From contig NW_025767308.1 of the NCBI RefSeq assembly GCF_003918875.1, positions 62,001 to 126,000 on the forward strand: a DNA stretch of 64,000 nt. Direction: 5' to 3'. A program made the position numbers and the translations under genes. Of the stretch, positions 7,061-63,154 are shown in pieces; positions within the stretch are counted from its first letter, which is position 1; every line of letters begins with the position of its first letter. Under the pieces are notes generated by a model. The model was not told the origin of the DNA, did not search any database, and saw only the letters and a program-made list of their open reading frames with translations. This DNA is from Haliotis rubra (lineage: Eukaryota).

Positions 7061-10000
7061 CTGAAAGAAGAGAATACATATATAGTGCCCTGTAAAATAA
7101 ATATCACAAATGACGAATATGGCATTTGGGAAATGTTGCAAACGAATAATGAGATATGCGAAGGAGAAAGATCCAATAAACAACACACTGCATATAAGCA
7201 GCAATTGGTGATACACTTTTCGTGCCATTATGGATTGTGTATACATTCAAACTACATGATGAGTTCATTATGTTCTTTTTAATTCACAATGTCACTCATC
7301 TTTATCAGTTAAAGTCTGAACTGAAACATCGCGTCTGTAAATATCTCCACAACGCTTGTTGAATCTACTTCCAATGCTACTGAGATTTACCTTTCATGAC
7401 GTTTCCACACCTGAGCCCCTTTCTGTAGAGTACCGTTAGAACTAGTCCTTCAATCAGCAAGGTAAGAAATAGGGTTCCTATTGCGGTTCCAGCTATTACA
7501 CCTGTCACGTTATAGTGGTCTTTAAGTGGTTCCGTGCTAGTGGGACCTGAAGTATAAATGTTAATTACGTGGTATTACAAATGATTGTATGTTTACTGAT
7601 TATATTCTAAAGAGCTGACATGTATGTCAAGCTGTGTGTTCTGTTCTTGACAAAGGTGCCATCTATCTCTAAACTGCTGCGTCTAAAATATCCCCACAAA
7701 TAACATGTATACATACCGTATTAACAGTAATTCATCTTACAATTGAAAGTGCAACATTAACTATATAGAGAAAGGATAGCTTGCGGTTAAAATCCCTAGT
7801 TACATGTACTATATCCCAAGCGAGGAGAGGAGATCGTACAGCTGAAGATAGGAAACAAAGGGATCTCAACCAATACTGATCTACAATTCAATGGAACAAA
7901 GGAACGGAATACAGCAAAAAGTGTAAATTGTATTTGGAATCCGTGGTATTCCTGTAAATCCATGGCCTGGCCAAAACCTGAAGGGTCCATTATATACGTC
8001 AGGTTTTGTCCTTGATACGTGTCGCTGTTGGTAGAATGACTCTTTGTACCTGTCAGTCCATTCAGAAACAGTTAATGATACTCACAGCTGACGTTGAATG
8101 TCCTGACATCAGTGTAGTTGTATCCTCCATACTGCCACGTCCCCAGACACTGACACTGTTGACCATGTTGACTCCTGCTGACAGTAAAGGAGAGAGTAGA
8201 TGTCCTGGTTTGACCACTGTCACTGACCAATGCAGATCCAGTGCCAGGACAGGACCACGTGATTGTAGCTAGAGGATTTCCTCCTGTCACCGAGCAGCTG
8301 ATTGTCTGTGGGTCTCCTTCAAACATCACATCCGGAAACTGTGTGATGGAAGGAGGGACAGGCGGGGGGTCTGAAACAGAAACAACCAAGACAGCAACTA
8401 TGATCAAAGTACAGATGTAACAGCAGAGCCCATGACCAAAATGATCTCAATACAATTAGCTCAGTATTTCCTCACCCAATGAAATCCGTTCATCCGATAG
8501 TATACACAATGTATCCAAGAGTGATAATCTCCTCTGTATATCACTCTCCTAGGCAACACTGTTTACATTTATATGCAAATTCCATATGGTTTTCCGATGC
8601 ACATCAACACAACGCGAATATACAAAAGATTGCACAAGCGCATACCAAATACTGAACATCATCATCATGTTGAGTCGTTATTCTTTAAAGGGAATACTGA
8701 GAATACTTAAGAATACTCACATTTGACATCCAGTGACACAGAACCAGTCTTAGTTGTCAAAGTCCTTGTGTTTCTGACCTGACATCTCACGGTTGTCTTG
8801 TCTTTTTTTTGCATGAAGGTGAGAGTCTGGTACCACCAGGTAGAAGATCCTGTCACTGACCCCCTGCTGCCATCTACAGGTGTTCCATCACTGTAGTCCC
8901 AGGTGAAGGACACGTTGGGATAAGCGGAGGCAGTACAGGTCAATGTCAGGTTTCTGTTCTCTACAGCTACAGAGTTGTCTGGTTTTGTCACATCAACCTG
9001 TTCTGGACCGACTGTAATACAGAGCAATAATCCGTGGCAGCGGTGATATCTGGACCTCTTACTGTATTGACAGTCTGTTATATGTCTACATGCTCGTCGA
9101 CATAAGGTAAATATATATCTTAACGACTCTCATCTTAACGAAAACTTATTTGATCTTCTTAATTTATCATCTGTGTCATGTTATTCAACTAGGTTACTCT
9201 ATTCACTCAGTGTGGCAATTAGACAAGTATTGATTGGCTGACATGAGAACTAAACTACTACTTAATATACAACTCACACCACACTCCTATCCGGGCGCTG
9301 TCAGACTGCACTGGGGAGGGGTTGTGGATGTTGGTGGCGCGACAGTAGACTGTATGACCAAGGTCACCTCTGACAGGAGTGAAGGTCATTGTACTTGTGG
9401 TCTGGACAACGCCTGATTGTGGTCTATGATCAATGGATATCCCACTTGCCACCAGGACACTGTTCTTGAACCACGTGATTGTGGCAGCAGGGTAACTGTC
9501 AGATGCCACACAGGTCAAGGTCAAGGGTTGACCTTCAGCAGCTCCCACTTCCTGATTGGCTGACGTGATGTTTGTTAGTGACACACTGTTGACAGCAACT
9601 GGATAGAAAGGGAAAAGGAAAGGAAATAACGTATATAACGGTCATACCCGACATGTCAATATCTTAGGGATAGAAAAAGTATCTCAACAGCATGAATGAC
9701 ATTTCAGGATACATCAATACATGTGCTTACTGTCAGGAAAGGAATAAGTAGAGTTGACTCTACACTGTGTTTTGGAAGCCTGGCAGTAGTACAGGAACAG
9801 GAAGTACCTGCTGTTGGATATCACACACGTATCTACACATACATTCGCATTACTTACTGTCAGGATAGGAATACGTAGAGTTGACTGTAGACTGCGTGTT
9901 GGATGCCTGGCAATAGTACAGAGAGTTTCTACTGATGGAAATCAAACTGTTATCTAAAGAAACATCCACATTACTTACTGTCAGGAAAAGAATAGGTAGA

Positions 10001-12576
10001 GTTGACGATAGACTGTGTGTTGGTTGCCTGGCAATAGTACGGTGAGTTCGTATTGTTGGATATCAAACTGTTATCTAAACAGACATTACTTACTGTCAGG
10101 AAAGGAATATGATGAGTTCACTCTCGTCTCTGTATTTGATGCCTGACAGTAGTACAGGGAGTTCCTACTGTTGTCTGTCAGCTGGTAGTTGATGGTGGCT
10201 GTCAAGCCAGTGTATCCCTCTACTGCTGCTGGGCTGGTGGCCACTCTGGTTCCGTCTCTGTACAGCGTCACTGACGGCGGTGGATTGGAGACAGCGGCGC
10301 AGGTGACAGATGTAGTAGTTCTAGTAAGGCTAACACTGTTCAGAGGAACTGAAATAATAACACAGCTTTATGAAGTATGCTGTCTCCGAGTTGAGTGGTG
10401 GTGGGGGTGAAAGATACAGGCGATAGATGAAATAGTTTCAAGGGATGGTATGACTGGTCAGAAAAACAGAACTAAATATCTTCATAAAGTACAGTGTATC
10501 TGTGTAGGACGGCAGTCTTTTGGAGACACAGACGATAGATGCAGTAGTTCTGGAGATGGTAACGTTGGTCAGAGGAAGTTACAATAATAACACAGCTGCA
10601 GTACGACACTACAGATTTGAACAATTGAGTGTTGAGGTTTGAAAACACAGGTGATGTGACATCCATCTCACATACACCGCACTTTAGCCAAATGTCAACA
10701 TGGCAAACGTACCTAGTACATCCATCTGTATCTGATTACTCTCTCTGCCTCCAAACTGATAGTCACACCTCCAGCCGAGTCTATCCCTGCCGTACACGAC
10801 GTTGTTGATGGTGAGGGTGTAGTTGGTGGAGCTGGGGCAGGAGGTGGTGTAGTCAGCTGGGAGGTAGGGGGAGGTGGAGCTGCAGCTACCCTGGTTTACG
10901 CTGTATAATAAAGTTCCATTCTGCCACTGTATAGTTGTATGTGAAGCGTCTCCTGTGTAACACATCAGGGTACAGCTCCCTCCTGCCTGTACAGAACCTC
11001 CACATGATGACGTCAGCTGATAGCTCTGGGCAGAAACTGAAATTCACAGAACGATGACAACAGCATGTACATACTCTTTACGGAAATCAAAGACTTCAGA
11101 ATCAGAATAACAACACATGACTATATATTATAGACAAAATCTTCTCCTTCCGGTAAACAACTTATCCGACTTATTCAGCACTGTTGTTGTCATTGACGTC
11201 ATTTCTTGTGTCATATTGTTTCACGATGCAGAGGAACATGTGTCCCAGTCATCCACGATACCAGAATTCGCTTTGCGGAGTTGAGTCCCTTTTCGGTGTG
11301 CTGGAAAAATTCCTGAGGGTTCAAACACCAGCGGTTTACCGCATTATGTGTCTTGGTATGTCAGCACCAAACCTGTTTTTAACCAAGCTAAATGTCCACG
11401 CTGTGCATACATCCTGTCATTCCACCTTCATCAACATGACACACCAGGCCGTGACTCACTTACTGTTTAAACCAGTTTTAAACCCACACTCATCTACTTA
11501 AACATTATTCTTGTTATCCTAAATCTTAGGAAGCAAGGTGTTTAACTCATTCGGAAGTTTGAAACTAAATCTTTCTTCGGTTTGTCTGAAAGTATAGGAA
11601 ATTGATTATTTCTTCGATTTTGCTTTATGTTCCTAGCTATTACACTCTCTGTTTAGGCCACTTTGTCTGTTATCAACGCTGCAGGCCACTATATAGCTGT
11701 CTGCTCTGTCCTACCGGTCGTTATCAACGGTACATGTATACATACAATCTACTTCGTACAATCTACTTCCTGGTTTTATTTTAGGTGACTGTATATGTGG
11801 GACCTGAGGTGTGAGATCCGTTGCGTTACCCCTAATGCATTTACAACTTAAACATGTTATAGACATACGTGTACCTACCCCGTTGTTTGTGAGGAATGTC
11901 CACCAGTAGAGTCCCAACTGTGAAGATAAGACGGAGGTACAGTACAGACATGTTGGTGGTGTGTGAAACTAGATACTAGCACTGGTGAACAGTGTATGTA
12001 ATTATACTTCCGGTTGTGTTGATATGCTAACTGGATATGTACAGCTTGATGTGTGTCATTCAGACGGGTATTCAGAGAAGTAGGTCGTATGTCACACATA
12101 CATTTAGCAGGTTGTGGAGTTGGGTGACAGTGTAGCTTTGTCGATTGTAATCTGTGTAGACATGGCATTCAGAACACCTGGATATTCACTACAGGTTACA
12201 TGTTGCTCAAATCAACTAGGTTGTGAGTCATATATAGTGTTGGGCGACAGGGTATATGTGCACTTACTATTTGTCTGAGTGTCTGTATATGTGCTTTAAA
12301 ATGTGGCTGTGTAGACGCTATATACCCATTGATGTAATTACCAAGAGTCGGTATACATTCATACAGAATACCTGCAGATTTAATGTGTGACTTGAACTAG
12401 TGTCTAAGACTAGTCTCTAAACAAACTTGTAGAAGTCTTCAATATGCCAGTCTCCAATGTTGAAGCACTAGAGAGGGATTTCTCGAGTTTCACAACATAT
12501 CACAACATGATAATGAATAAATGAAACACTTACATATACATTTGCGTATAGCAAACAACAAAAGTATCAAATCCAT
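6196..12576 (-). CDS. Gene B: IgSF receptor (leader, 5 Ig domains, TM, tyrosine-motif tail); possible +1 frameshift in tail micro-exon
   Basis: Exons 12534-12576, 10713-11036, 10094-10348, 9278-9598, 8721-9011, 8086-8370, 7391-7546, 7041-7060, 6840-6892, 6658-6753, 6409-6519, 6196-6218; all GT-AG; domain exons are multiples of 3, phase 1. Confidence 0.85.
7391..7546 (-). CDS. Gene B transmembrane exon
   Basis: 156 nt; GVIAGTAIGTLFLTLLIEGLVLTVLYRKG. Confidence 0.9.
8086..8370 (-). CDS. Gene B Ig domain 5 exon
   Basis: 285 nt; ISCSVTGGNPLATITW...CQC. Confidence 0.9.
8721..9011 (-). CDS. Gene B Ig domain 4 exon
   Basis: 291 nt; LTCTASAYPNVSFTW...VRCQVRN. Confidence 0.9.
9278..9598 (-). CDS. 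Gene B Ig domain 3 exon (C2-like)
   Basis: 321 nt; LTCVASDSYPAATITW...VYCRATN. Confidence 0.9.
9731..10075 (-). repeat. Three diverged copies of the 3' third and donor of the gene B Ig2 exon
   Basis: CCTGACA|gtaag boundaries at 9979, 9858 and 9731, each preceded by an open YYCQA...S[FY]PD frame. Confidence 0.9.
10094..10348 (-). CDS. Gene B Ig domain 2 exon
   Basis: 255 nt; VTCAAVSNPPPSVTLY...YYCQASN. Confidence 0.9.
10713..11036 (-). CDS. Gene B N-terminal Cys-rich V-like exon
   Basis: 324 nt; CTLMC..IQW..YTLTINNV..DRLGWRC; six Cys. Confidence 0.88.
12534..12576 (-). CDS. Gene B signal-peptide exon
   Basis: MDLILLLFAIRKCI; 43 nt, phase 1; donor gtaagt. Confidence 0.75.
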
Positions 12577-16677: not shown

Positions 16678-19600
16678 CTGGAAAACAGGAATAGTAAAAA
16701 TGTCATTAGAGTGTGAAACACACTTCACAAATATCAACTTGTCACATCATCAACGAAATGGAGAGAGACAAATGCCTTTTCTGTAAATTACTGTGGATGG
16801 AAACTAGAAAAATACATACGTTGTACTTATACTGTGTACCTTTAAGAATGTTTGTAACTCTGTACCCCTTTCGGTACAGCACAATTAGAACAATCCCTCC
16901 AATGAGCAGCGTAAAAAGAATGCCTCCTACTGTCGCTCCTGCTAATACCCCTGTACTGATACATGAAGCTTCGAGCTTTTCCTGGTCTGGTGGATCTATA
17001 ATGTAATAACAGCATAAAATATGACTGTGAATTGTGTGCATTTGTGGTTCAACTGAGCCCTGTACAATATTCTAGTGACAAGCACAAGCCCCGCACAAGT
17101 CATTAGTGTGTGTACCAAGCTAACACACAACGTTTTCTCGGCGTTTCCGGTTGTACATTGGTAACGTCATGATACAACGTTGTCGCAACATTAGTATGAC
17201 GTCATTGTATAACGTTATTTCACACCGTTACAGTACCATTACATACATACGTTGTCTAACGTTTCTGCAGACGTAAAAGAACAAGGTAGTGCATTATTTT
17301 CTATTTTCTTTCATTCCACTTTGGGATTTCCATCCCATTAATATACTAAAGTCACAGAGACGTAATTTCCATTCTTTCTGACCACGTTATTATCAAATCA
17401 CTGTGCAACCTTGTGTCACAACGTAATAACACCGTTGCAAGTTTACGTTGAGGAAACGTTATGCATTGGGCTCCTCACAAGTATGATAACAACGTTTGTT
17501 ACAACTTGGTGTCACGACAGAGTTTTCTGTAAAACCCTTAGGATAAAATTCACTTTTGAGATTCGGTCTTCACTATTCATCTGTAGATGATGCGGTGGGT
17601 TGTAATATAAATACACCTTGCAAGCGGTGGGTTGTAATATATGGACGAGACAATGACAGCATGACTTGATGGGAACCGATGACATGCATCAACCGATCCC
17701 GTTAGTCGCCTTACGACAAGCATAGTCGCCTTGTATGGCAAGCACAGAGTCTGACCACCAGAACCAGTTAGTCACCGTTTACAACAAGCAGGGGTCAATG
17801 AGGACCAGTCCTTCCCCAGTTCCCCAAGGGGTTCATTCCCAGTGTTATTCACGCCCATCCTCATCACATCAAACCCCGACATAAATGTTAACTGTAAATA
17901 CAAAGATTTGCGAAAACGTTGATTGTGCATATTCATATTTACGCCCTAATATCTGATGATGAATTGATATCTTCACACGAAAACGTTCCAAACTTTAACA
18001 TTAATTATACTTAGTGTAAATAATTATATTTATTCAGATATAGAGTCAATTACGTTCCCTTTGTGAAACACGAAGTGCATTAGCCTACAAGGACTCTGAA
18101 ATTACTCTTGTTCTTTTATCTGAATATGTACCCAAATAAGAAATTGTTCATGAAAGCTATCCATTTATTTCATTCAGATGCAGTTACCAAGTTGTCCATG
18201 AGATACTAAGAGTAACCAGTGAGTGATTCTCGCCAAGATACACTTACCACCAGCAGTCCCAGCTTCTACCAATACATTTCCATCAGAATCCCCGTAGTCA
18301 TTTCTAGCTTGTAGTCGGAATATGTAAGTCTCTCCAGGTAAAAGCCCCGTCACTTCTAACACCATCATCTCGCCCCTGTCATTATAAGATTTATACACAG
18401 TCCACGGTAGATACTCAATTAGAAACATCTGAGTGCGTCCAACATTGAACCCAGGCAGCCACGACAACCATATTGACGACGTTGTTGCATTATCCAGATA
18501 TCGAAACTGTACAGGTGTCTCTGGTGGCCCTTACAAGAAATAAACATAGAAAATGTAATTATAGAAATTGTAATTCCATTGGTTGAAAAGTTCAAATGAA
18601 AAATGAGGACAATTGTTATGTATATACAACTCATTCTTGCTTGACAACATTAGAATCTATGTCGATCATAACGCCACCTATACAGAATAAAGAAGTTGTA
18701 TATCCACAAAAAATGTCGTCATACTCTGCAACTTCTAGAGTACCAATCAAACAAGTCCAAATGAAGGTAAATGACAGAAAAAAATGAAAAAAGTGGAATC
18801 CGGTAAGCTTCAATGGTAAATCTGAAAGCATAACACCTACAGCCACTACGCTGACAATGTATGTGACTGGACTCCCCACGCCATTGCCCACTGTCAGACT
18901 GTAGTCCCCGAAGTCCTGCTGTTGGAGTTTAGTAAGGTGTAGTCTGGCAGTGACTGAGATGTCTGAGACAGGGCTGGAGGAACTAGTGAGGTCCTGGCTG
19001 GTGCTGATGGATCTACTCCAGGTGAATGTAGGAAGAAGGATGGGCCAGGACTGACACAGACACAGTCACGTCACCACCGAGTGTAGCGGCGAACTTGAGT
19101 TGCTGGGACACTGAGTCAACAAGTCGTGGAGAACCTGGTATATGTACAACAGCATAATGGCTATTCAAGACTCAGTAATGTGTCACATAGGGAAAGGCCG
19201 TACTTACAGTCGGTAATGAGTGAGTGAGTTTAGTTTTACACCGCCATTATCAATATTCCAGCAATATCACTGCGGGGGAACAATAGAAATGGGCTCCACA
19301 CATTGCAACCATGTGGGCAGTAATTCGAATGATAAAATGTCGATTTTAGAGAACTACCATAAAATAGTAACAGAAGTTCTGGTCATCCAGATTGTGGCCC
19401 TTTTTAGATTTTTAGCATGTCTGTATGCGTTTACATATAGCAGAGAGTACTACATTGCAAGATCAAAAGAATACTTGAACGAGATGTTGATTGTAATACC
19501 AAATGTAACATATTTACGCTAAATTATAACCTAAATAAACTACAATACACATACAATGGTCAAATAAATATTACATTTAACCAGCAGCTCCACCCTCTGG

Positions 19601-22600
19601 GTGGCAGGTGCCCCGATGTTGTTAGTGGCAGTACAGGAGTAGTTCCCTCTTTGTCTACAGTCTGCTGACTCCAGTCTGTATGTTGCTGTCAGGGAGTTAT
19701 CTGCCCTTGTCAGCTCCTCAGATCCATTCAGTAACCTGATGACTGACTTTGGATTACTGTCAACCTGGCAGCTCAGTGTCACTGTATCAGACTCGTTGAC
19801 TGTCACTGAGCCACTTTCAGAGTTGGCGGTAAACGTCCGTATGCTTGCTCGGTCTGAAAGAAACATCAACTGTGTGTGTGTTTATGTAATATTCATTGAT
19901 TTTCATTGACGTTGTTTGTTTATGATTTCAATAATTCCAACAATACAAAGTATGGTGTAGCCTATGACATGTAGTTTCATCGTTGATGTAAAAAAATGAT
20001 ATCTGAAGCTGTCATCTTGGCATTGCCACATTTCATCTGTGTACACGGCAGGGCATCATATGCACTCAGACATTTTTTGTAACATTCCTTCGAACATTTC
20101 TGTGACGATGTGATTACGGGAAATCCACCATGTCGACAAACTAATCCCTTCTGATAAATTATTTAGTTGCGTGATTATATAAGTGTTTCTCTGACTAAAC
20201 CGTGAAGTTTAGAGGAATGAAATACCTTCATGTTAAGCATTACTCAAGCGGCCGCATCCTTTGGTGTCATGTCACAGCTTCTGAGGTACAATCAAGCATG
20301 ACCTTTCTATAGCGACCCTTATGAGCCTCAACGTTGTTTGAACAAGGTGACAACGTTCAATGCCTTATTAAAAGTTTCTAAACGTTTTCAGGTAGGCATG
20401 TGGAGGTTTTTCCACATTTGCCGCATCTGTCGCAGATATGATGGTTAATGGCATTCCATGTTTTTTGACGGTTAACGTGTTCCCGAGCTTGTTTTCCAGC
20501 TTACACTTGGTATCGCTATTTGAGGGTGATTCATAAACGGATGATACATCCGGAATCTTACAAGCAACTCAGCTTTGAATGTGGGAAAGGTTTTTGGTTA
20601 ATTATTCATGTATGATATCACATTGCTGTCACAAATTCACACACACGCACGTTAGATATATAAAATCAAATTTGTGTTTGAAGGCCACGACGCCTAATAC
20701 AAGAAAGTGGCTTCACACGTTGCACTCGTGTGGGGAATTGAACCCGGGCATTCGACGTGACCAGCGGGGCCTTGTGCTGATAGGCTACCCAGTCACCCTG
20801 GTGGTATAAAGAAATGGTCAGCTGTATGCAACACCTCATGTACACCTTACATTAATATTTAGGGTATTCGTGTATTAGTGGATTTTGTCAATGTTAATAA
20901 ACAATAGCTCAGAGGTCAGCTGGAACACATACATACTGTTTAATTAACTTCTTTTAGAGGCTCACTTTAGAAATGCTTCACCATTCGCCGGACATATATT
21001 TACATACCAAAAAATGTCGTTTGCATGGTTGATAGCTGGGGACGATCATGACAAGATGTGAATAATTTCAATAGTGAATGAATTGTTTTGTGCCATTATA
21101 TACCGAGGTTCACTCATACGAAAAATGTGATAGAAGGCTATTCCTGGTTTTCATTGATCAATGATAGATTCAACTGTATTGACGGAACTGATAATTTATT
21201 GTAATGGGCCAACTTAACTAATATTGTCAACGTGATTGCACGTATACGTCAATAGAGCATATCTGTTTAGTAATTAACATTCAATATATATTTATATAAC
21301 ATATAACTGAAAGCAAACAATAGCATTCTTCTAAACCAGCTGCCCACACTATTCCCAGCAGTTGCAATATGGCGCGCGGCATAATGGGTAATGCAACTGG
21401 TAGCTAGGATGAGATAGATAGTGACGTCGTCGCAGTCACACCTTGCATACTGAAACTAAACATGTTCAAAGAGTTGGTGATGTTAATTGTGATACGGTCA
21501 TACCTCACAGAAGTAGACTTTGGTCCCCTGTCAAAACCCAAATACAGCTCCAGTAGAACAGTAGCTAGTCCTGTACCGCCCCAGTAGAACGGAAGATCCG
21601 CCATATGACTATAGTCTATTTTTCAAGGTAGAGAACGAATACTGTTAAGAATTGTCTAGCACCAGCTACTCACATTGCACATCTACACTGACTGAGTCTG
21701 AATCTGATCCCTGAGTGTTGCTGGCAGTACATGTGTAGTCTCCTCCCTGACTCCTGCTGATGTTTCTTCTGTCAAGTACAGACCCAGTACTGACAGGAGA
21801 TCCACCATAGGTCCATGTGTAGCTTGTTGTTGGAGGGTTGCCTGGTGTGGTGTAAGTGCTACAGTCTATCCTGAGGTTAGAGATCTCTGTGACAGTCTGT
21901 GTTGGTGGTAGTCCAGATATAGACGGTGGATTTAAAGATTACAAATCAATTTGCTAAATTCAGTTGACGATAGTTAACTTTTGTGTCTCCAGATTTTGTG
22001 GCTATATTAGATCAGAATGTGCAACATGTTACCTGTACAGAAATGTGTATATGCTGAAACTGTACAATCACAGCAACAGACAGTGTTAGATATAGGTGAA
22101 GGTATCGGGGTAACTTACATTGTACATTTACACTGACTGAGCCTGAATCTGATCCCTGACTGTTGCTGGCAGTACAGGTGTAGTCTCCTCCCTGACTCCT
22201 GCTGATGTTCCTTCTGTCAAGTACAGCCCCAGTACTGACAGTAGAACCACCATAGGTCCATGTGTAGCTTGTTGTTGGAGGGTTGCCTGGTGTGGTGTAG
22301 GTGCTACAGTCTATCCTGAGGTCAGAGAACTCTGTGACGGCCTGTGTTGGCTGTAGTCCAGATATGGAAGGAGGGTCTGAAATAAATAGTCAGTGAATTG
22401 TTGTTAAATACGTTTGTGCACTAACTGAGACTAAGCCTGATCCCCGACTGTTGATGGCAGCATAGTGGTAGCTTCCTTCTGATGTAGGTACTACTATATA
22501 TCAAGAAACGGGATGACTCAATCACTGTGTAGGTAGAAGAGTGAGGCTGTATATTGATGACAGCGCAGAGAAGCTTCCAACCTGGTGTAGGTACTAATGT

Positions 22601-25394
22601 ATATCAACAATTTACCTAAAACCTATTGTATCAAAACAAGTAAAGCAAAATTCAAATTCCTCATGTCATCATCAGATTGTAAACTTATAAATAACTTAGC
22701 TAGCTTTATCTATAATGCAATGTATCTAAGATGTTAAAAAGTATCAATCTATACTGTACACACCATGTTTTGCCATGTAAATGTAACCTATGTAGTTATG
22801 GGCCGATGACCTACACTTCTGTAATAAAGAATTGATATATCAGGGAACGGGATGACTCCTTCCTTGTGTAGGTGGAAGGGAGGTCAGATGTTTATGTGTA
22901 CAAGTATACATTCCATATGCTGTATGCTTAAATCACGTCTAGTTCAAAAGTTCACATTGATTTTAATGTTGAAGAATTATGTTTTTTTTCAAAAACATAT
23001 TAATGAAAACACAGGTCAATGCCTTATGATAAATATACATCTGACATGAGACAACGTGTGTGTAATTTCATTTTAAATTGCTTCTTAAAAATATGTGTTG
23101 ATGCACGAAAGGTGTTATAGTTTACACGTCATAAACAAACTCTGAAGCAATGCCTGTGGATTCTTAAGGGCTGATATCTATAATTCAGAAAGGTATCTAT
23201 ATGGGAGTAATTTGACTGAATCAAATCCGGTGTATAATGCTTGCTGAAGGGAAGACGTGGGGGTTCTACGTTTGAGTTCCGTAACCCGTACATGTGTCAA
23301 TTTAAATAATATTTACAACATATCTGTGTTTAATCATCTGCACTCAGTTGGTATACATAGTGTATCCATTATTTTATGGAGCTTATCATTGGATCATATT
23401 ATCAGGAAAACAAAGGAAGGTAATGAATAAAGGTATCATAATCCATCATACATTTCTGTCCAAGCAGACTGGATTGTACGGTTCCGATGATATCATGAGC
23501 ATCTGTTTATGAATCATTATCACATGTTTATGAATCATTATCAAACGTGTAGAATATATGTGTATACTTCTTAGTGTACAGCACTTGAACGTATCAGTAT
23601 ATGCCACACTGAAACGTATATGCTGGAATCAATATATTACAAAGAAATGAAGACTTTCGTTCGTGTCAAGTTGGAACTTGCTTTTTTATACATACGCACA
23701 GTGCACTGCACTTTATAAAGTGTATAGACCAAGTATTAGATTATGTCACACATTTAAAAAAAACATGTTATACTGATGAAACAGGCAATCATTTTATAAG
23801 TCATGTTGTTGGTTTGCATGCATACATACTCAACACAGAGGCAGTGACATCAGCATAACCAGACCCTGGCAGCAACAACACTTCACACCTGTAGGTCCCG
23901 GCATAGCTGGAGGTCTCGGGTTATCCTTCATTCACTAAAATGGCTGTCAAATACTTACTCAACACAGAGGCAGTGAAATCAGCATAACCAGACTCTGTCA
24001 GTCCAGTCACTGCACACCTGTAGATCCCGGCATAGCTGGAGGTCACGTGACTGGCAGGCAGCTGGATGTCGACGGAGGAGGTGTAGTCACCAACAAACAC
24101 GCCCTTGCTCTGCCAGGAGTCCAGGAACACAGCTGTCTGAGCAGTCACTGATCCACTGACTATGTTCACTGTAGAGCTGCCCTCCACCCTCCTCCATGCG
24201 AACACAATAGCAGCATCCCCAGGTGTCACAGTGTAGCTGCATCTCAATGTCAGAGCCTGCTGGTTGGGTATCCCTGTACCTCCTGACCCTGATACAGTCA
24301 CTGCTCCCTCAACACCTGGAAATAAGTAACAACATCACCAGGTGTCACAGTGTAGCTGCATCTCAGTGTCAGAGCCTGCTGGTTGGGTATCCCTGTACCT
24401 CCTGACCCTGATACAGTCACTGCTCCCCCAACACCTGGAAATAAGTAACAATATCACCAGGTGTCACAGTGTAGCTGCATCTCAGTGTCAGAGTCTGCTT
24501 GTTGGGTATCCCTGTACCTCCTGACCCTGATACAGTCACTGCTCCCCCAACACCTGGAAATAAGTAACAATATCCCCAGGTGTCACAGTGTCACAGTGTA
24601 GCTGCATCTCAGTGTCAGAGCCTGCTGGTTGGGTATCCCTGTACCTCCTGACCCTGATACAGTCACTGCTCCCCCAACACCTGGAAATAAGTAACAATAT
24701 CACCAGGTGTCACAGTGTAGCTGCATCTCAGTGTCAGAGCCTGCTGGTTGGGTATCCCTGTACCTCCTGACCCTGATACAGTCACTGCTCCCCCAACACC
24801 TGGAAATAAGTAACAATATCACCAGGTGTCACAGTGTAGCTGCATCTCAGTGTCAGAGCCTGCTGGTTGGGTATCCCTGTACCTCCTGACCCTGATACAG
24901 TCACTGCTCCCCCAACACCTGGAAATAAGTAACAATATCACCAGGTGTCGCAGTGTAGCTGCATCTCAGTGTCAGAGCCTGCTGGTTGGGTATCCCTGTA
25001 CCTCCTGACACTGATACACTCACTGCTCCCCCAACACCTGACAATGAGGAATAGGTGCCAGGTCTCTGGCGGGCACATATATCTAGCTGATAAATGAGGG
25101 ATCACAGTCTAGGCAAATCTTTATATTTTACACTTCTTTATTAAACCCCGAAAACCATTCCATCGATATCAATATCTTCCCTCACCGTTTACGTTGGTCC
25201 TGCCCTCGATACTAGTACGCACTATGTACGTCTGTGAAAATGATACATGTTGAGTAGTAGATGCAGGAAGTATTTAATTAAGAAATAGATTTTGTTTGCT
25301 AATACTCATAGATAATCTTTACTCTAAAGCCTTATTTACCTTTCAACAGGACAACTGCAAACACAGATGTTGCTATAATACGAAGGAACGCCAT
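15810..25394 (-). CDS. Gene C: IgSF receptor (leader, V, 3-4 Ig, FN3, TM, tyrosine-motif tail); one +1 frameshift
   Basis: Exons 25340-25394, 23959-24315, 22119-22376, (21674-21931), 19575-19853, 18837-19134 (298 nt), 18248-18529, 16840-16995, 16662-16677, 16450-16502, 16268-16360, 16020-16130, 15810-15823. Confidence 0.8.
16840..16995 (-). CDS. Gene C transmembrane exon
   Basis: 156 nt; GVLAGATVGGILFTLLIGGIVLIVLYRKG. Confidence 0.9.
17090..17580. repeat. Intronic repeat shared with gene D (32920-33480)
   Basis: Alignable taacacacaacgttttctc...aaattcacttt(t)gagattcggtcttcactattca in the same FN3-TM intron of C and D. Confidence 0.7.
18248..18529 (-). CDS. Gene C fibronectin type III exon
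   Basis: 282 nt; PPETP..LSWLPGFN..GLLPGETYIFRLQARNDYGDS; 15-nt in-frame deletion relative to paralogs. Confidence 0.9.
18837..19134 (-). CDS. Gene C membrane-proximal Ig exon, frameshifted
   Basis: 298 nt versus 297 in D and F; extra base near 19036. Confidence 0.8.
19218..19330 (-). mobile_element. SINE 3' fragment
   Basis: gagtgagtgagtttagtttt...ttccagcaatatcac matches the 3' end of the SINEs at 59615-59777 and 28665-28783. Confidence 0.7.
19575..19853 (-). CDS. Gene C Ig exon
   Basis: 279 nt; TLSCQVDSNP...GNYSCTATN. Confidence 0.9.
21674..21931 (-). pseudogene. Duplicate of the gene C Ig2 exon with a mutated acceptor
   Basis: 258 nt, open and closely similar to 22119-22376; preceded by ctttaa instead of ...AG; donor gtgagt intact. 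Confidence 0.75.
22119..22376 (-). CDS. Gene C Ig2 exon
   Basis: 258 nt; RIDC..PGNPPTTSYTW..GGDYTCTASN; absent from the ORF track. Confidence 0.9.
23830..23914 (-). other. Partial V cassette (F-G strands plus donor) with a different FG loop
   Basis: TSSYAGTYRCEVLLLPGSGYADVTASVL|gtatgt versus main exon TSSYAGIYRCAVTGLTESGYADFTASVL|gtaagt. Confidence 0.85.
23959..24315 (-). CDS. Gene C V-set exon (canonical Cys, Trp, Cys)
   Basis: 357 nt; LTLRCSY..FAW..YAGIYRC. Confidence 0.9.
24220..25040 (-). repeat. 119-bp tandem array of the V-exon 5' end and acceptor (7 copies)
   Basis: cag|GTGTTG at 24315, 24434, 24553, 24680, 24799, 24918 and 25037; one unit is 127 bp. Confidence 0.95.
25340..25394 (-). 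CDS. Gene C signal-peptide exon
   Basis: MAFLRIIATSVFAVVLLK+G; 55 nt, phase 1. Confidence 0.8.
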
Positions 25395-35564: not shown

Positions 35565-36335
35565 GACATTGACTTGTAACTGAACTGTCACCAGTGTAGA
35601 CTATATACTTACACTGAACATCAAACTGACTGTAACAACACTGTACTGTAACACTGTCACCAGTGTAGACTATATAGACTTACACTGAACATCACTGACT
35701 GTAACACTGTCACCAGCCAGACTATATACTTACACTGAACATCAACACTGACTGTACAGACTATATACTTACACTGAACATCAACACTGACTGTAACACT
35801 GTCACCAGATACTTACACTGAACATCAACACTGACTGTAACACTGTCACCAGTGTAGACTATATACTTACACTGAACATCAACACTGACTGTAACACTGT
35901 CACCAGTGTAGACTATATACTTACACTGAACATCAACACTGACTGTAACACTGTCACCAGTGTAGACTATATACTTACACTGAACATCAACACTGACTGT
36001 AACACTGTCACCAGTGTAGACTATATACTTACACTGAACATCAACACTGACTGTAACACTGTCACCAGTGTAGACTATATACTTACACTGAACATCAACA
36101 CTGACTGTAACACTGTCACCAGTGTAGACTATATACTTACACTGAACATCAACACTGACTGTAACACTGTCACCAGTGTAGACTATATACTTACACTGAA
36201 CATCAACACTGACTGTAACACTGTCACCAGTGTAGACTATATACTTACACTGAACATCAACACTGACTGTAACACTGTCACCAGTGTAGACTATATACTT
36301 ACACTGAACATCAACACTGACTGTAACACTGTCAC
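35565..36335 (-). repeat. 54-bp tandem repeat containing exon end and GTAAGT donor (10 regular plus ~4 degenerate copies)
   Basis: Donor boundaries every 54 nt from 36303 to 35817; further ones at 35773, 35734, 35684 and 35613. Confidence 0.95.
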
Positions 36336-47822: not shown

Positions 47823-50800
47823 CTGGAAAGTGTAATAACGTTTACATAGTGAATGCAGGACTGCAGATAAACAATCAGAGACAATCGAGGCATCAAGGGT
47901 GAGCAGTGTCGACGAACATCAACAATGTATACTTCCAGCAATAAACATAGAAGATAATCCCAACTAAACAGGCATTTTCTTTAGAAATTCGACAAAGATA
48001 GAGCTTATGGGAGACATCAATATCACATTATCTGACATTGAAGATGCAAATCTCTGAGCTCGCAATCTTTTCTCTTTATCATATGCTTTATTTGGAAAAC
48101 TCATGTACCTTGGTAATACGGCTCTTGGTCTCGCTTATCTTGGATCCGCGACCTTCAGCAGAAACGTCAATAATGTCAAGAGGGCATGCAATTCACACAC
48201 ACATACGCTTGCAGTCGCAAAAAGTGTCACACACAAGCATACACGCACACACACACACATGTGTGCATATAAGGAGACAGAGAATTAGGTTAAATGGCAA
48301 AAGCTGTGTTTAGCTATAACCGCTTACAAGTACAACTATGAAAGGAAACTTACGTATTCGGCATGTCTGTTGTGCCTGTGGAGATACCAAAGATGACGTC
48401 ATGTCAAACTTTGTCGATAGAAGTTAAATATCTTAGCAGTGCAAGTTTGCTGTTTACTCACGTATAGTGCCTAACAAAAAAGTACACCAGTACGTTACTG
48501 TTACCGTATCGCGAAGAGGCAACATTGCTGCATAACGTGCTGAATTACATTGCTGTGCATAATTATGTTGCCTTTTGCACAGTGAGTGAGTGAGTGAGTT
48601 AGAATTTAACGTCACCTCGGCAATATTTCAGCCATATTGTGACGAGAAATGTTTTACATAAACAATAATTAAAGTTGCTAAATAATCAGTCATCGAAGGA
48701 CTGTAAAATAACTAGAGTATCACAGATGAAGTCTAAAACTAGCATGAACATGTAAAACTATTTTATTTACGAAGACAATACAATATAAAAACAGGCTATA
48801 GATCGCCAACAACTGAAGGTAGATCACCATACTAGGAACCATGGGGACTTACATTACTTTTTCTCCCTGCATGGACCCTAGCTGGATTTACACCATCCCT
48901 TCAGCTGTTGGCGATTGTAGGAAAATTTAGCCACAAATTAAAATGACAAGAATACTACGTTTAAAAACACAGGACGTAAAAAAATTACTTTGAAAGGTTT
49001 TGGGACTTACGTACCCTCTCAGGAGGACAATAATTTTACGCTAGCCTTTTGCACAGCATACATTATACCTACCTGTACTCTGCAATGCACATGCACATTC
49101 GCATCTCGTCTTCATCAATACGACAACGACGACCACAACAACGACAACCACAAACAACACACCACCTGCCACTTCAGCGATAAATCCAGTTTGTGAAGGG
49201 GGCGACCGAGCTAAAACAGAAATACCTCACGTTTCCACAACGTTACACAACAAGGAGTGCGTAATGCACACAGACATCGTTTGGAGTAAAAGAAAATATA
49301 GTAGGGTGTTTGAAAAGTACACTCTTTACTCTAAATATCTGCTCGCACAATGTATGGGTCGAACGTATTGGGCTTCAATGGTCGTATTTTCATGCGTATC
49401 ATTTACATTCTGTTGTGTGGCAAATTCAGTTAGGAACTACTTCTCCATAACCGGCCTGATGACATCAAGATGCAATTAAGGTGAATGGCCAATTGTTCAT
49501 GTTGTCGTACTCAGCAATATTCCATCTACAGTTGGATCTATATCAGAAAGTAAATAATGTCTTGTCTTCAATTAAGTCACCTCACTCAACATGCTTGAGA
49601 TGCTTGGCACCTGTGGCATATTCTCAAGTGTTCTCGAGGTTTCGTGATTTGTTAGCTGCCCCGCCATGGTGACATCAGTGACAACTATAAAGCCAAGGGA
49701 GGTTTTACACACATTCCTTATTGTCCAAAGGTCAAAATCCTGCTTTTGGCATCCAAAGCCAGTAAGCAAAACGATTTTATGATAACATCCATGCCGAACG
49801 TTCTGAGAGGTTAACTTTCAGTGTCATAGTGTATGTCAGTAAGCATAAAATGAAAACCATTTCACACCACAGCTAGCTGCAAGATTGTTGATGCAATGTT
49901 AACACATTCACTTAGGTATGGTTATATTAGGTTAAATTAGATTTAGTTTTAATTAGCTAATATCTGTCGACGCTTGATGATTTCTACACCAAATGTGTTT
50001 AAACACATTTTGACAGCTGACACTTTCATTTAGTCATCGAAGGTAAGAGCACAAAAACACAATTGCATTTCTCTGAAGTTACACCTCCACAACACTATAT
50101 GTCACCACAGATGTCCCCACACAAGGACTGAAGGTGTCGATAGCTGTACACACATCCAGTATTTTAACAATGATACTTACACTGTACATCCACTGTCACC
50201 TGCACAGCGTCAGATATCTACACACACAAGGACTGAAGTTGTCGATAGCTGTACACACATAAGTCCAGTATGCTACCAATATGGTACTTACACTGTACAT
50301 CCACTGTCACATGCACAGAGTCAGATATCTACACACACAAGGACTGAAGTTGTCAATAGCTGTACACACACCCAGTATTCTAACAATGATACTTACACTG
50401 TACATCCACTGACACCTCCATAGAGGCAGATCTCACTACAGATGTCCCCACACAAGGACTGAAGTTGTCGATAGCTGTACACACATAAGTCCAGTATTCT
50501 AACAATATGGTATTTACATTGTACAACCACTGTCGTCTTTACAGAGTCAGATCTCACTACAGATGTCCCCAAACAAGGACTGAAGCTGTCAATAGCTGTA
50601 CACACATAAGTCCAGTATGCTACCAATATGGTACTTACACTGTACATCCACTGTCGTCTCTACAGAGGAAGATGTCACTACAGCTGTCCCTACTTTAGGA
50701 CCGAGGGTGTTAGTGGCCGCAACAGACACAGAAGTACCGTCTGGCATACAAAAAATATGCATTGACCTTTCCTTTGCTTGCTACACTGAAGGAACAACCT

Positions 50801-62996: not shown

Positions 62997-63154
62997 NNNN
63001 NNNNNNNNNNNNNNNNNNNNNNNNNNNNNNNNNNNNNNNNNNNNNNNNNNNNNNNNNNNNNNNNNNNNNNNNNNNNNNNNNNNNNNNNNNNNNNNNNNNN
63101 NNNNNNNNNNNNNNNNNNNNNNNNNNNNNNNNNNNNNNNNNNNNNNNNNNNNNN
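62997..63154. other. Assembly gap
   Basis: Run of N. Confidence 1.

Follow-up and report, generated by a model that had tools for sequence, protein, structure and literature searches.

In the abalone Haliotis rubra, the V exon of an immunoglobulin-superfamily gene, here called gene C, is followed within its intron by a second copy of the exon's 3' end, which encodes a different hairpin. The question raised by this locus is whether the copy serves as a store of sequence for the V exon, as an alternative ending of the V domain, or as neither. The window, meaning the whole stretch of 64,000 nucleotides that was analyzed (contig NW_025767308.1, positions 62,001 to 126,000), provides all coordinates given below; a run of N at 62997-63154 was left out of the analysis. 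The initial annotation had described an open copy with its own donor 129 nt downstream of the exon and had likened it to a pseudo-V conversion donor or to a captured piece of another allele or paralog. The reading preferred here, at a probability of about 0.7, is that the copy would be an old duplication of the 3' exon boundary that was overwritten by its own exon, with the canonical donor in normal use and the copy carried along as intronic ballast.

Gene C is an abalone-specific Ig-superfamily receptor with the order V, Ig, Ig, Ig, Ig, FN3, transmembrane segment, and a tail with tyrosine motifs. The parts around the V domain are as follows.

25340..25394, minus strand: leader exon of gene C, MAFLRIIATSVFAVVLLK, phase 1, donor G/GTAAAT, identical to residues 1-19 of XP_046545506.1

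24316..25040, minus strand: tandem array of about 7 copies of a 119-nt unit, a 5' boundary array of the 'mirage' type

23959..24315, minus strand: V-set Ig exon of gene C, 357 nt, phase 1-1, canonical donor A/GTAAGTAT at 23958

22119..22376, minus strand: next exon (Ig2), the splice target for both the canonical donor and that of the copy; a contig from sequencing run X9 covers 22154..22338 with 1 other letter

The AlphaFold2 model of the V exon has a pLDDT of 94.4, with strands at 35-44, 47-55, and 60-63. Its best Foldseek matches in the PDB are the V-set domains of VSIG4/CRIg, a VHH, and MPZ (TM 0.76-0.81), and C25, W40, and C100 are invariant in the family alignment. The C' and C'' strands and the Cys-Trp-Cys core of a V-set fold are found in the predicted structure and the alignment. 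The Pfam gathering thresholds were not reached by the exon (Ig_2, 20.1 bits with a cut-off of 27; ig, 17.5 bits with a cut-off of 21.8). A frameshift in Ig5 was considered as a sign that gene C is a pseudogene, and this was rejected as unproven because the base at 19036/19040 is absent from every contig in four sequencing runs, relative to the window; the assembly appears to be locally erroneous at this point. Upstream of the V exon, each unit of the 119-nt array consists of a splice acceptor and roughly the first 100 nt of the exon. The array is also present at the H. rubra paralog locus L004, and the unit is single copy in H. rufescens, H. cracherodii, and H. asinina. The window contains other boundary arrays as well.

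At the 3' end of the V exon, a repeat finder identified minus-strand 23918..23822 as a direct repeat of 24047..23951, the exon end with its donor. The 2 units are 97 nt long, start 129 nt apart, and have an identity of 86.6% (87% in the repeat finder). The elements are arranged as follows.

23951..24047, minus strand: repeat unit 1, the final 88 nt of the V exon (F strand, hairpin tip, G strand) with the donor GTAAGTAT

23919..23950, minus strand: spacer between the units, 32 nt (about 33 nt across loci), not itself repeated

23822..23918, minus strand: repeat unit 2, the 'spare F-G cassette', open from 23914 to 23830, with its own donor A/GTATGTAT and GT at 23829-23828

23864..23881, minus strand: hairpin-tip patch within unit 2, GTGTTGTTGCTGCCAGGG, encoding V-L-L-L-P-G

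The open part of unit 2 spans 85 nt, is preceded by TAA, and ends at 23830, exactly 129 nt past the exon end. Its translation is TSSYAGTYRCEVLLLPGSGYADVTASVL, and that of the exon end is TSSYAGIYRCAVTGLTESGYADFTASVL. Repeat finder, blastn, and translations thus bear out the copy as it was initially described. No further copy of the V exon 3' end was found in the window by blastn of the exon. Minisatellite behavior, with several head-to-tail units and unstable length, was not seen, since there are 2 units and the same number in all loci that have the duplicate; in this respect the 3' duplication is unlike the 119-nt array of 7 copies, which does behave as a minisatellite.

That the second unit derives from a mis-joined haplotype or a long-read error would agree with the local error suspected at 19036/19040. 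Against this, a contig of run X1 covers 23496..23856 with zero differences, and a contig of run X3, from a closely related but different organism, spans 23637..23915 without gaps, differing at 13 letters. The same layout is also found in independent assemblies of 3 other species, and an assembly artifact is therefore scarcely credible.

The age of the duplication can be read from 7 related loci of four Haliotis species (L001, L002, and L004-L008). The layout of exon end, spacer of about 33 nt, and copy was found in 6 of them, while L007 has no copy at the locus. The spacer is recognizably conserved in 6 of the 7, so the copy occupies the homologous place. The sharing of one layout at one place implies that the duplication is older than both the divergence of H. 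rubra, H. asinina, and the North Pacific abalones and the expansion of the paralogs. Deletions, insertions, or stops interrupt the copy in all 6 loci having it. The copies of H. rufescens (L001) and H. cracherodii (L002) share 66-69% identity with their own exons and 82% with each other, and are damaged by a 27-nt deletion or by +4/+1 insertions, and by stops. The H. rubra paralog L004 has lost the loop through a deletion of about 46 nt, the H. cracherodii copy at L006 carries a deletion of about 30 nt, and in H. asinina (L005 and L008) the first 15-20 nt alone remain. Decay in all 6 other loci indicates that the copy is not a conserved functional element. It is also largely the outcome that the initial annotation had named as evidence against its own proposal, namely the gathering of stops and indels in copies of the cassette, here across species and paralogs.

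In gene C itself, exon and copy differ at 13 of 97 nt. Eight of these differences fall inside one 15-nt window (P=0.0014) and in the hairpin-tip patch, and 6 are consecutive (P=0.00015; 200,000 random placements for each value). The concentration of divergence at the F-G loop, which had been noticed at the outset, therefore exceeds chance. The further statement that this is not expected from neutral decay is weaker than it sounds: 6 of the 8 loop differences form one consecutive run, which fits a single complex event. The counts of 1.3 synonymous differences per 22.8 sites and 10.7 non-synonymous differences per 64.2 sites are too few for significance. In the protein, L-L-L-P of the copy replaces a Gly that is kept in 12 of 17 aligned family members, the two versions of gene C being excluded.

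Polarity divides the differences between the two units. The loop changes arose on the branch of the copy, where every change is at the hairpin tip and none occurs in the other ~74 nt of the converted tract. Two framework changes (I and A) arose on the real exon, and judged from the alignment the third (F) probably did likewise: T97, E101, and V113 are the common states of the family, and the exon of gene C is the outlier. The E codon at 24012 is also carried by nearly all other contigs in four runs. The argument against neutral decay is weakened further by this, as I and A, and probably F, are not changes of the copy. Both halves of this pattern can be read in more than one way. A change restricted to the tip is what selection on an expressed loop would also give, and the three replacements at conserved sites could just as well be a sign that the real exon end is out of use.

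The near-identical framework would be explained if the exon had overwritten the copy. The copy of gene C shares 86.6% identity with its own exon and 61.5% with the copies of other species. At three silent sites (TCC, AxC, and TCT) it agrees with the gene C exon and not with the nearest paralog, L004. Its G strand and the shared SGYAD codons are of exon type, and the GTATGT of the old copy is kept only in the donor. In a maximum likelihood tree, the North Pacific copies form a clade (100%) within the North Pacific exon group (94%), whereas the H. rubra copy is placed among the exons of H. rubra and H. asinina. From the closeness of the copy to its own exon and from the shared silent states, we infer that it was overwritten by gene conversion. 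Conversion between the two units, as initially suggested, is therefore supported by identity, silent sites, and tree; the suggestion of a captured piece of a paralog is contradicted by the silent sites.

The direction of transfer bears on the proposal that the copy is a template, similar to a pseudo-V, whose sequence would pass into the V exon, either in the germ line or somatically, and vary the hairpin tip. Sequence has passed between exon and copy at least once, their differences are concentrated at the tip, and somatic diversification including gene conversion is reported for snail FREP genes (e.g., PMC3313920). The transfer deduced here runs from exon to copy, though, and comparison with the other loci revealed no exon patch that matches the copy and no exon segment with copy-specific states. 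One candidate for the opposite direction, at GACCTCC, was rejected because exons of both H. rubra and H. asinina commonly have ACC, the change being to ACA in the North Pacific group. Additionally, there is one 85-nt template and not a bank, the homologous copies have decayed in six other loci, and the loop is absent from the other V exons and proteins searched, except for a model built from this DNA. A role as conversion donor is thus very improbable, and the part of the initial annotation that proposed it is not supported.

The source of the loop is a narrower matter. Loop patch or copy may have been converted from another V exon similar to that of gene C and carrying L-L-L-P-G, or from a gene C allele; such an import would bear on where the loop came from and on nothing else, and is compatible with an old duplication. 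Several results from the runs point in this direction. Depth over the exon end is ~879, compared with ~150 per single-copy contig, and the variant with the E codon at 24012 amounts to 1158 of 1317 depth units in X1. Excess depth and E-codon share together suggest several similar V exons in addition to the four H. rubra loci compared. One X1 contig has yet another loop variant at 24000-24006, and six consecutive changed bases are more easily produced by templated replacement than by point mutations. The searches did not yield a source, however. With up to 3 mismatches, the 26-nt and 18-nt loop patches occur in the window only in the copy itself, and a search of ~230 kb of related loci for any 10-12-mer of the patch gave only scattered chance 10-11-mers. 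When the first 223 residues of XP_046545506.1 were used in a word search, annotated genome proteins alone were returned and no open reading frames of the run assemblies. Among 12 annotated proteins of the V-region family, the loop is found only in XP_046545506.1, which was built from this DNA, so that the search for CEVLLLPGSGY in other V exons, proposed at the outset, found it in none of the related loci or other family proteins. The silent sites outside the loop also link the copy to the gene C exon. An outside source for the loop is accordingly possible but rather doubtful.

Whether the copy is ever expressed depends on splicing. TACAG/GTGTG is present in both units, which makes the following in-frame intron possible.

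23889..24017, minus strand: potential 129-nt GT-AG intron, with GT from TACAG/GTGTGC (unit 1, after 24018) and AG from CCTACAG/G (unit 2, before 23888)

Joining 24315..24018 to 23888..23830 gives an open stretch of 357 nt that corresponds exactly to residues 20-137 of XP_046545506.1. This computed RefSeq model takes the 129-nt route and reads CEVLLLPGSGY. An in-frame route of another kind had been pointed out in the initial annotation (GT at 24046-45, AG at 23916-15); it exists, removes 132 nt, and has weak signals, but the 129-nt route, overlooked at the time, is the better one. The loop is thus found in a complete V domain, as had been looked for, although by a different splice route and in a model that is chimeric and only computed.

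Under a reading in which this duplication-born intron is really spliced, the V domain would end in the hairpin of the copy, CEVLLLPGSGYADVTASVL, alongside or instead of its own end, as a form of two-choice, half-exon mutually exclusive splicing. XP_046545506.1 has exactly this structure, with canonical GT-AG, the frame kept, and the GTATGT donor of the copy. It is not obvious why an ab initio predictor should prefer an additional intron with weaker signals, so that RNA-seq junctions may underlie the model. The copy framework also retains the consensus T, E, and V, all three of which were lost by the exon's own end, the changes on the copy branch are confined to the hairpin tip, and the copy is free of indels in the second, related organism. 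The model itself is unreliable, though: it joins the 5' exons of gene C to the 3' exons of another gene, which lies 29-31 kb beyond the window, and at Ig3 its donor is an internal one and its acceptor is not AG. The signals of the intron are weak, with GTGTGC as the donor against GTAAGT at the canonical site, and an acceptor with ~52% pyrimidines and two competing AGs upstream. In contrast to the RefSeq model with its use of the copy, two RNA-like contigs from the small run X9 (a close relative; the RNA status of the run is a guess) end exactly at the canonical exon end, 23959, as would fit splicing at the authentic donor; X9 has no depth at 23632-23813. The replaced Gly also weighs against an expressed loop, and the breakage of the homologous copy in six loci means that any use in splicing would be private to gene C. 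Real splicing of this intron is therefore considered unlikely. The same low expectation applies to its consequence, that the boundary duplication gave gene C a second F-G hairpin and one V exon two variants of the binding face.

The preferred history of the locus, with the copy as ballast, would be the following. A tandem duplication of 2 units arose long ago across the 3' exon-intron boundary of the V exon, and the copy is its second unit. In gene C, the copy would then have been overwritten by its own exon through gene conversion, which is usual between tandem repeats. After this, the real exon would have changed T to I, E to A, and probably V to F at positions conserved in the family, and the copy would have gained a compact change at the hairpin tip, one six-base run and two more bases. 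The tip change may have come from one complex mutation, from an island missed by conversion, or by import from an unseen paralog. Our best guess is that the canonical donor is normally used and that the copy is spliced in occasionally or never.

If the copy is ballast, it shows that a boundary duplication can persist through speciation and gene duplication, and that the duplicate can be refreshed by the neighboring exon through gene conversion. Such a duplicate can also mislead gene prediction, and the hairpin in the RefSeq protein is possibly never made. If the copy is spliced in, this would be a rare natural example of a duplication-born intron through which part of an Ig domain is swapped in an immune-type receptor of an invertebrate. 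The other exon-end ladders of the cluster would then become worth testing, as raw material for the same trick.

Chicken pseudo-V donors form an upstream bank of promoterless V fragments. Gene C is similar in that a promoterless V fragment lies beside a functional V and sequence appears to have been exchanged by conversion. It is unlike in having one short fragment, placed in the downstream intron, with the inferred transfer running the opposite way and with homologues that decay in related loci. Transfer from donor to expressed V was not observed, as shared derived states and silent sites indicate exon to copy, and templates maintained across related loci were not found, as 6 of 6 are broken. 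The pseudo-V analogy is not supported whichever way the copy is used. Dscam-type clusters of mutually exclusive exons encode half Ig domains in dozens of alternatives. If the RefSeq route is real, gene C would likewise offer two tandem alternatives for one part of an Ig domain, one chosen per transcript. It differs in having only two, in the incompleteness of its exons, and in an alternative that is unconserved across species; no set of complete, conserved alternative exons was seen, since the copy is partial and has decayed in H. asinina, H. rufescens, H. cracherodii, and the H. rubra paralog.

A closer likeness exists to the creation of introns by tandem duplication of a coding segment containing AGGT (Rogers model; Hellsten et al. 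2011, PMC3265369). Such a segment is duplicated in tandem here, AG/GT is present in each unit, and the 129 nt from GT of unit 1 to AG of unit 2 exceed a minimal intron and keep the frame. Removal of this stretch gives a full-length V exon, as in the computed RefSeq model. In contrast to the Rogers model, the duplication includes the real donor of the exon, so that gene C works without a new intron, and the putative splicing would swap in a diverged F-G end instead of restoring the original protein.

The 'mirage' repeats of PMC3087553 evolve in concert, have units of 10-160 bp, and can affect 5' as well as 3' boundaries. In gene C both boundaries are affected, and the 129-nt unit lies within this range. 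Each unit of the direct tandem duplicate spans the boundary (88 nt of exon and 8-9 nt of intron) and holds the exon end together with its splice signal, GTAAGTAT in the first and GTATGTAT in the second. The units appear to evolve in concert, and the authentic site may still be in use. Unlike mirage repeats, the 3' duplication of gene C has two units and an unrepeated 32-nt spacer, occurs in a mollusc, and has a copy that differs from the exon mainly at a surface hairpin. It is also old, being common to four species and several paralogs, and not a young array of unstable length. With these differences, the copy in gene C is, judged by its sequence, a boundary duplication of the mirage kind, which is common in this gene cluster.

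Every gene in the window is carried by the minus strand, among them gene C, an abalone Ig-superfamily receptor gene in which the 3' end of the V exon occurs in two versions. The exon and its second version, here called the copy, are arranged as follows.

25394..25340, minus strand: leader exon of gene C
24315..23959, minus strand: V exon of gene C, 357 nt, phase 1-1, ends A|GTAAGTAT
23822-23918, minus strand: unit 2 (the copy), 85 nt open after TAA, ends A|GTATGTAT
3' of the V exon, minus strand: Ig, FN3, transmembrane and tail exons of gene C

A 97-nt direct repeat (23951-24047 and 23822-23918; 129 nt apart, 87% identity) was detected by the repeat finder, in agreement with the initial annotation of an open 85-nt copy with its own donor, 129 nt past the exon end. 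The translations offered there for the exon end and the copy were reproduced exactly. No third copy of the V-exon 3' end was found within the window by blastn. Exon and copy differ at 13 of 97 nt; 8 of these differences fall inside one 15-nt window (P=0.0014) and 6 are consecutive (P=0.00015), and the concentration of divergence at the loop noticed earlier is therefore above chance. In the AlphaFold2 model (pLDDT 94.4) the V-exon product has a V-set fold, with VSIG4/CRIg, VHHs and MPZ as best PDB matches (TM about 0.8). The modelled F strand runs over residues 96-104 and the G strand over 108-117, with the turn at 105-107; residues 103-107, the variable patch, are thus predicted to form the tip of a short F-G hairpin, CDR3-like by position only. 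In the protein search, family relatives among the matches listed were confined to Haliotis species.

Seven related loci were compared: H. rufescens L001, H. cracherodii L002 and L006, H. asinina L005 and L008, and the H. rubra paralogs L004 and L007. In 6 of the 7 the exon end is followed by a homologous spacer of ~33 nt and a copy starting (N)TGACCTCCAG, and this common layout makes the duplication older than the compared species and than the paralogs. The copy is damaged in all 6 loci having one.

L001 copy (H. rufescens): 27-nt deletion
L002 copy (H. cracherodii): +4 and +1 insertions, stops
L006 copy (H. cracherodii): ~30-nt deletion
L004 copy (H. rubra paralog): ~46-nt deletion taking out the loop
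L005 and L008 copies (H. asinina): first 15-20 nt alone remain

Random stops and indels, one of two observations that the initial annotation had said would count against its proposal of a spare cassette, are seen across species and paralogs (6/6 loci). In H. rufescens (167 aa, L001 6001-6641) and H. cracherodii (154 aa, L002 6001-7005) the short annotated protein comprises leader and V domain, then continues past the V-exon donor through the spacer and into the decayed copy; each is either a prediction artefact or a V-only isoform with a retained intron.

The copy of gene C matches its own exon at 86.6% identity and the copies of H. rufescens and H. cracherodii at only 61.5%; identity between those two copies is 82%. 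Copy and exon have in common derived SGYAD codons and a G strand of exon type, and the GTATGT donor is retained from the old copy. At 3 silent sites the copy matches the gene C exon and differs from L004; synonymous difference is about 0.06 between copy and exon versus 0.14 between gene C and L004. In the ML tree, the copies from North Pacific species group as one clade (100%) within the North Pacific exon group (94%), and the H. rubra copy falls among exons of H. rubra and H. asinina. From these patterns we infer concerted evolution, in which the exon overwrote the copy lineage by lineage. A contig of organism B, a close relative, spans the copy without gaps (run X3), which probably places the refreshing of the copy before the two lineages separated.

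The copy is thus best explained as an old duplicate of the exon boundary, renewed from the exon by conversion, with a probability of about 0.7. The V-exon boundary was duplicated before the species split and paralog expansion; exon sequence would then have overwritten the gene C copy, and the copy would afterwards have changed at the hairpin tip. The pseudo-V conversion donor proposed earlier is unsupported, as transfer would have run from exon to copy and the homologous copies decayed in 6 loci. Capture of a paralog piece, also suggested there, is unsupported for the framework, whose silent sites match its own exon and not L004, but may still apply to the tip.

With exons of other species as outgroups, polarity was assigned to the differences. 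The real exon changed at I97 and A101, and probably at F113 too: there the two-outgroup test was ambiguous, but V occupies the position in most family members and in the paralog exon. The copy retains T, E and V at 97, 101 and 113, the common family states. Exon codons I97 (24024-24022), A101 (24013-24011) and F113 (23977-23975) replace T, E/Q and V of nearly all family members, and nearly all other contigs of four runs have an E codon at 24012. The copy side accounts for the six-base run (ACTGGA to TTGTTG) and for the donor +4 difference. Post-conversion changes lie at the hairpin tip only in the copy, and mainly in the framework in the exon. No source of the tip patch was found in the window or ~230 kb of related loci. 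One complex mutation could account for it, as could an island that conversion skipped or an import from a further paralog; read depth implies several further paralogs.

Another explanation, that the copy is a real alternative F-G module, spliced via a predicted 129-nt intron, is considered unlikely. TACAG|GTGTG occurs in both units, and GT 24017-16 and AG 23890-89 flank an in-frame 129-nt stretch, a route overlooked by the initial annotation. Joining 24315..24018 to 23888..23830 yields exactly residues 20-137 of XP_046545506.1, 'hemicentin-2-like [Haliotis rubra]' (...AGIYRCEVLLLPGSGYADVTASVL|NPPS), to which the V exon is 95% identical. The loop variant thus occurs in one annotated full V domain, weak support coming from a computed model. 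That model was computed from the same DNA as the window (its contig is 100% identical across 28,394 bases). It is chimeric, spanning 56.8 kb (3001-59836 of its locus, L003; window 25394 to ~31 kb beyond window position 1), and the coding sequence for residues 358-703 lies 29-31 kb outside the window, past its start; the leader, V, Ig2, half Ig3 and Ig4 of gene C are fused to Ig5-FN3-TM-tail exons of another cluster gene. At Ig3 an internal donor and a non-AG acceptor are used. The Ig3 exon (start 21932-21940), about 445 nt downstream of Ig2, is a copy of it (~90%) and is preceded by AA, not AG; the model takes its first half and exits via TATG|GTGGAT. Signals of the 129-nt route are weaker than canonical GTAAGT: the donor is GTGTGC, and the acceptor has competing AGs and a pyrimidine content of about one half. 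Two small RNA-like contigs of organism B end precisely at the canonical exon end, 23959; its RNA-like run has no depth at 23632-23813, in the intron just past the copy.

Other irregularities exist in the window. The Ig5 exon of gene C (~19132-18835) is split across two frames, and one base at 19036 or 19040 (within 19030-19045) is absent from every contig of four runs, the RNA-like one included; this frameshift may reflect an error of assembly, or paralogs may be the source of the contigs. A very high-copy interspersed repeat lies in the introns flanking the Ig4 exon (19854..19573), with contig depth of 0.1 to 2.9 million in DNA runs at 19082-19445 and 20720-20901, and hundreds of loose contig ends at 19217-19279. 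At 24316-25040 (minus strand) a 119-nt unit, comprising the V-exon acceptor and first ~100 nt of the exon, is repeated ~7 times (96 nt before GTGATA and 23 nt after; 96 nt would stay in frame). The same array occurs at L004 9526-10231, and the unit is single-copy in H. asinina, H. rufescens and H. cracherodii. Ig-exon ends in the window carry at least four further tandem arrays, each repeating a 3' end and donor.

99-438: 114-nt unit
9726-10173: 121-nt unit
35636-36335: 54-nt unit
50117-50690: 121-nt unit

Of the window's arrays with units of at least 50 nt, 5/7 lie on Ig-exon boundaries. Among boundary duplications, a class common in the H. rubra genome, the gene C duplicate is unusually old. 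The same kind of concerted evolution has been described for the mirage repeats of amphioxus, tandem duplications across exon-intron boundaries (PMC3087553). In the Rogers/Hellsten route, an intron arises from an AGGT-bearing duplication (PMC3265369); the gene C pair likewise supplies GT and AG, although the intron here is a predicted one.
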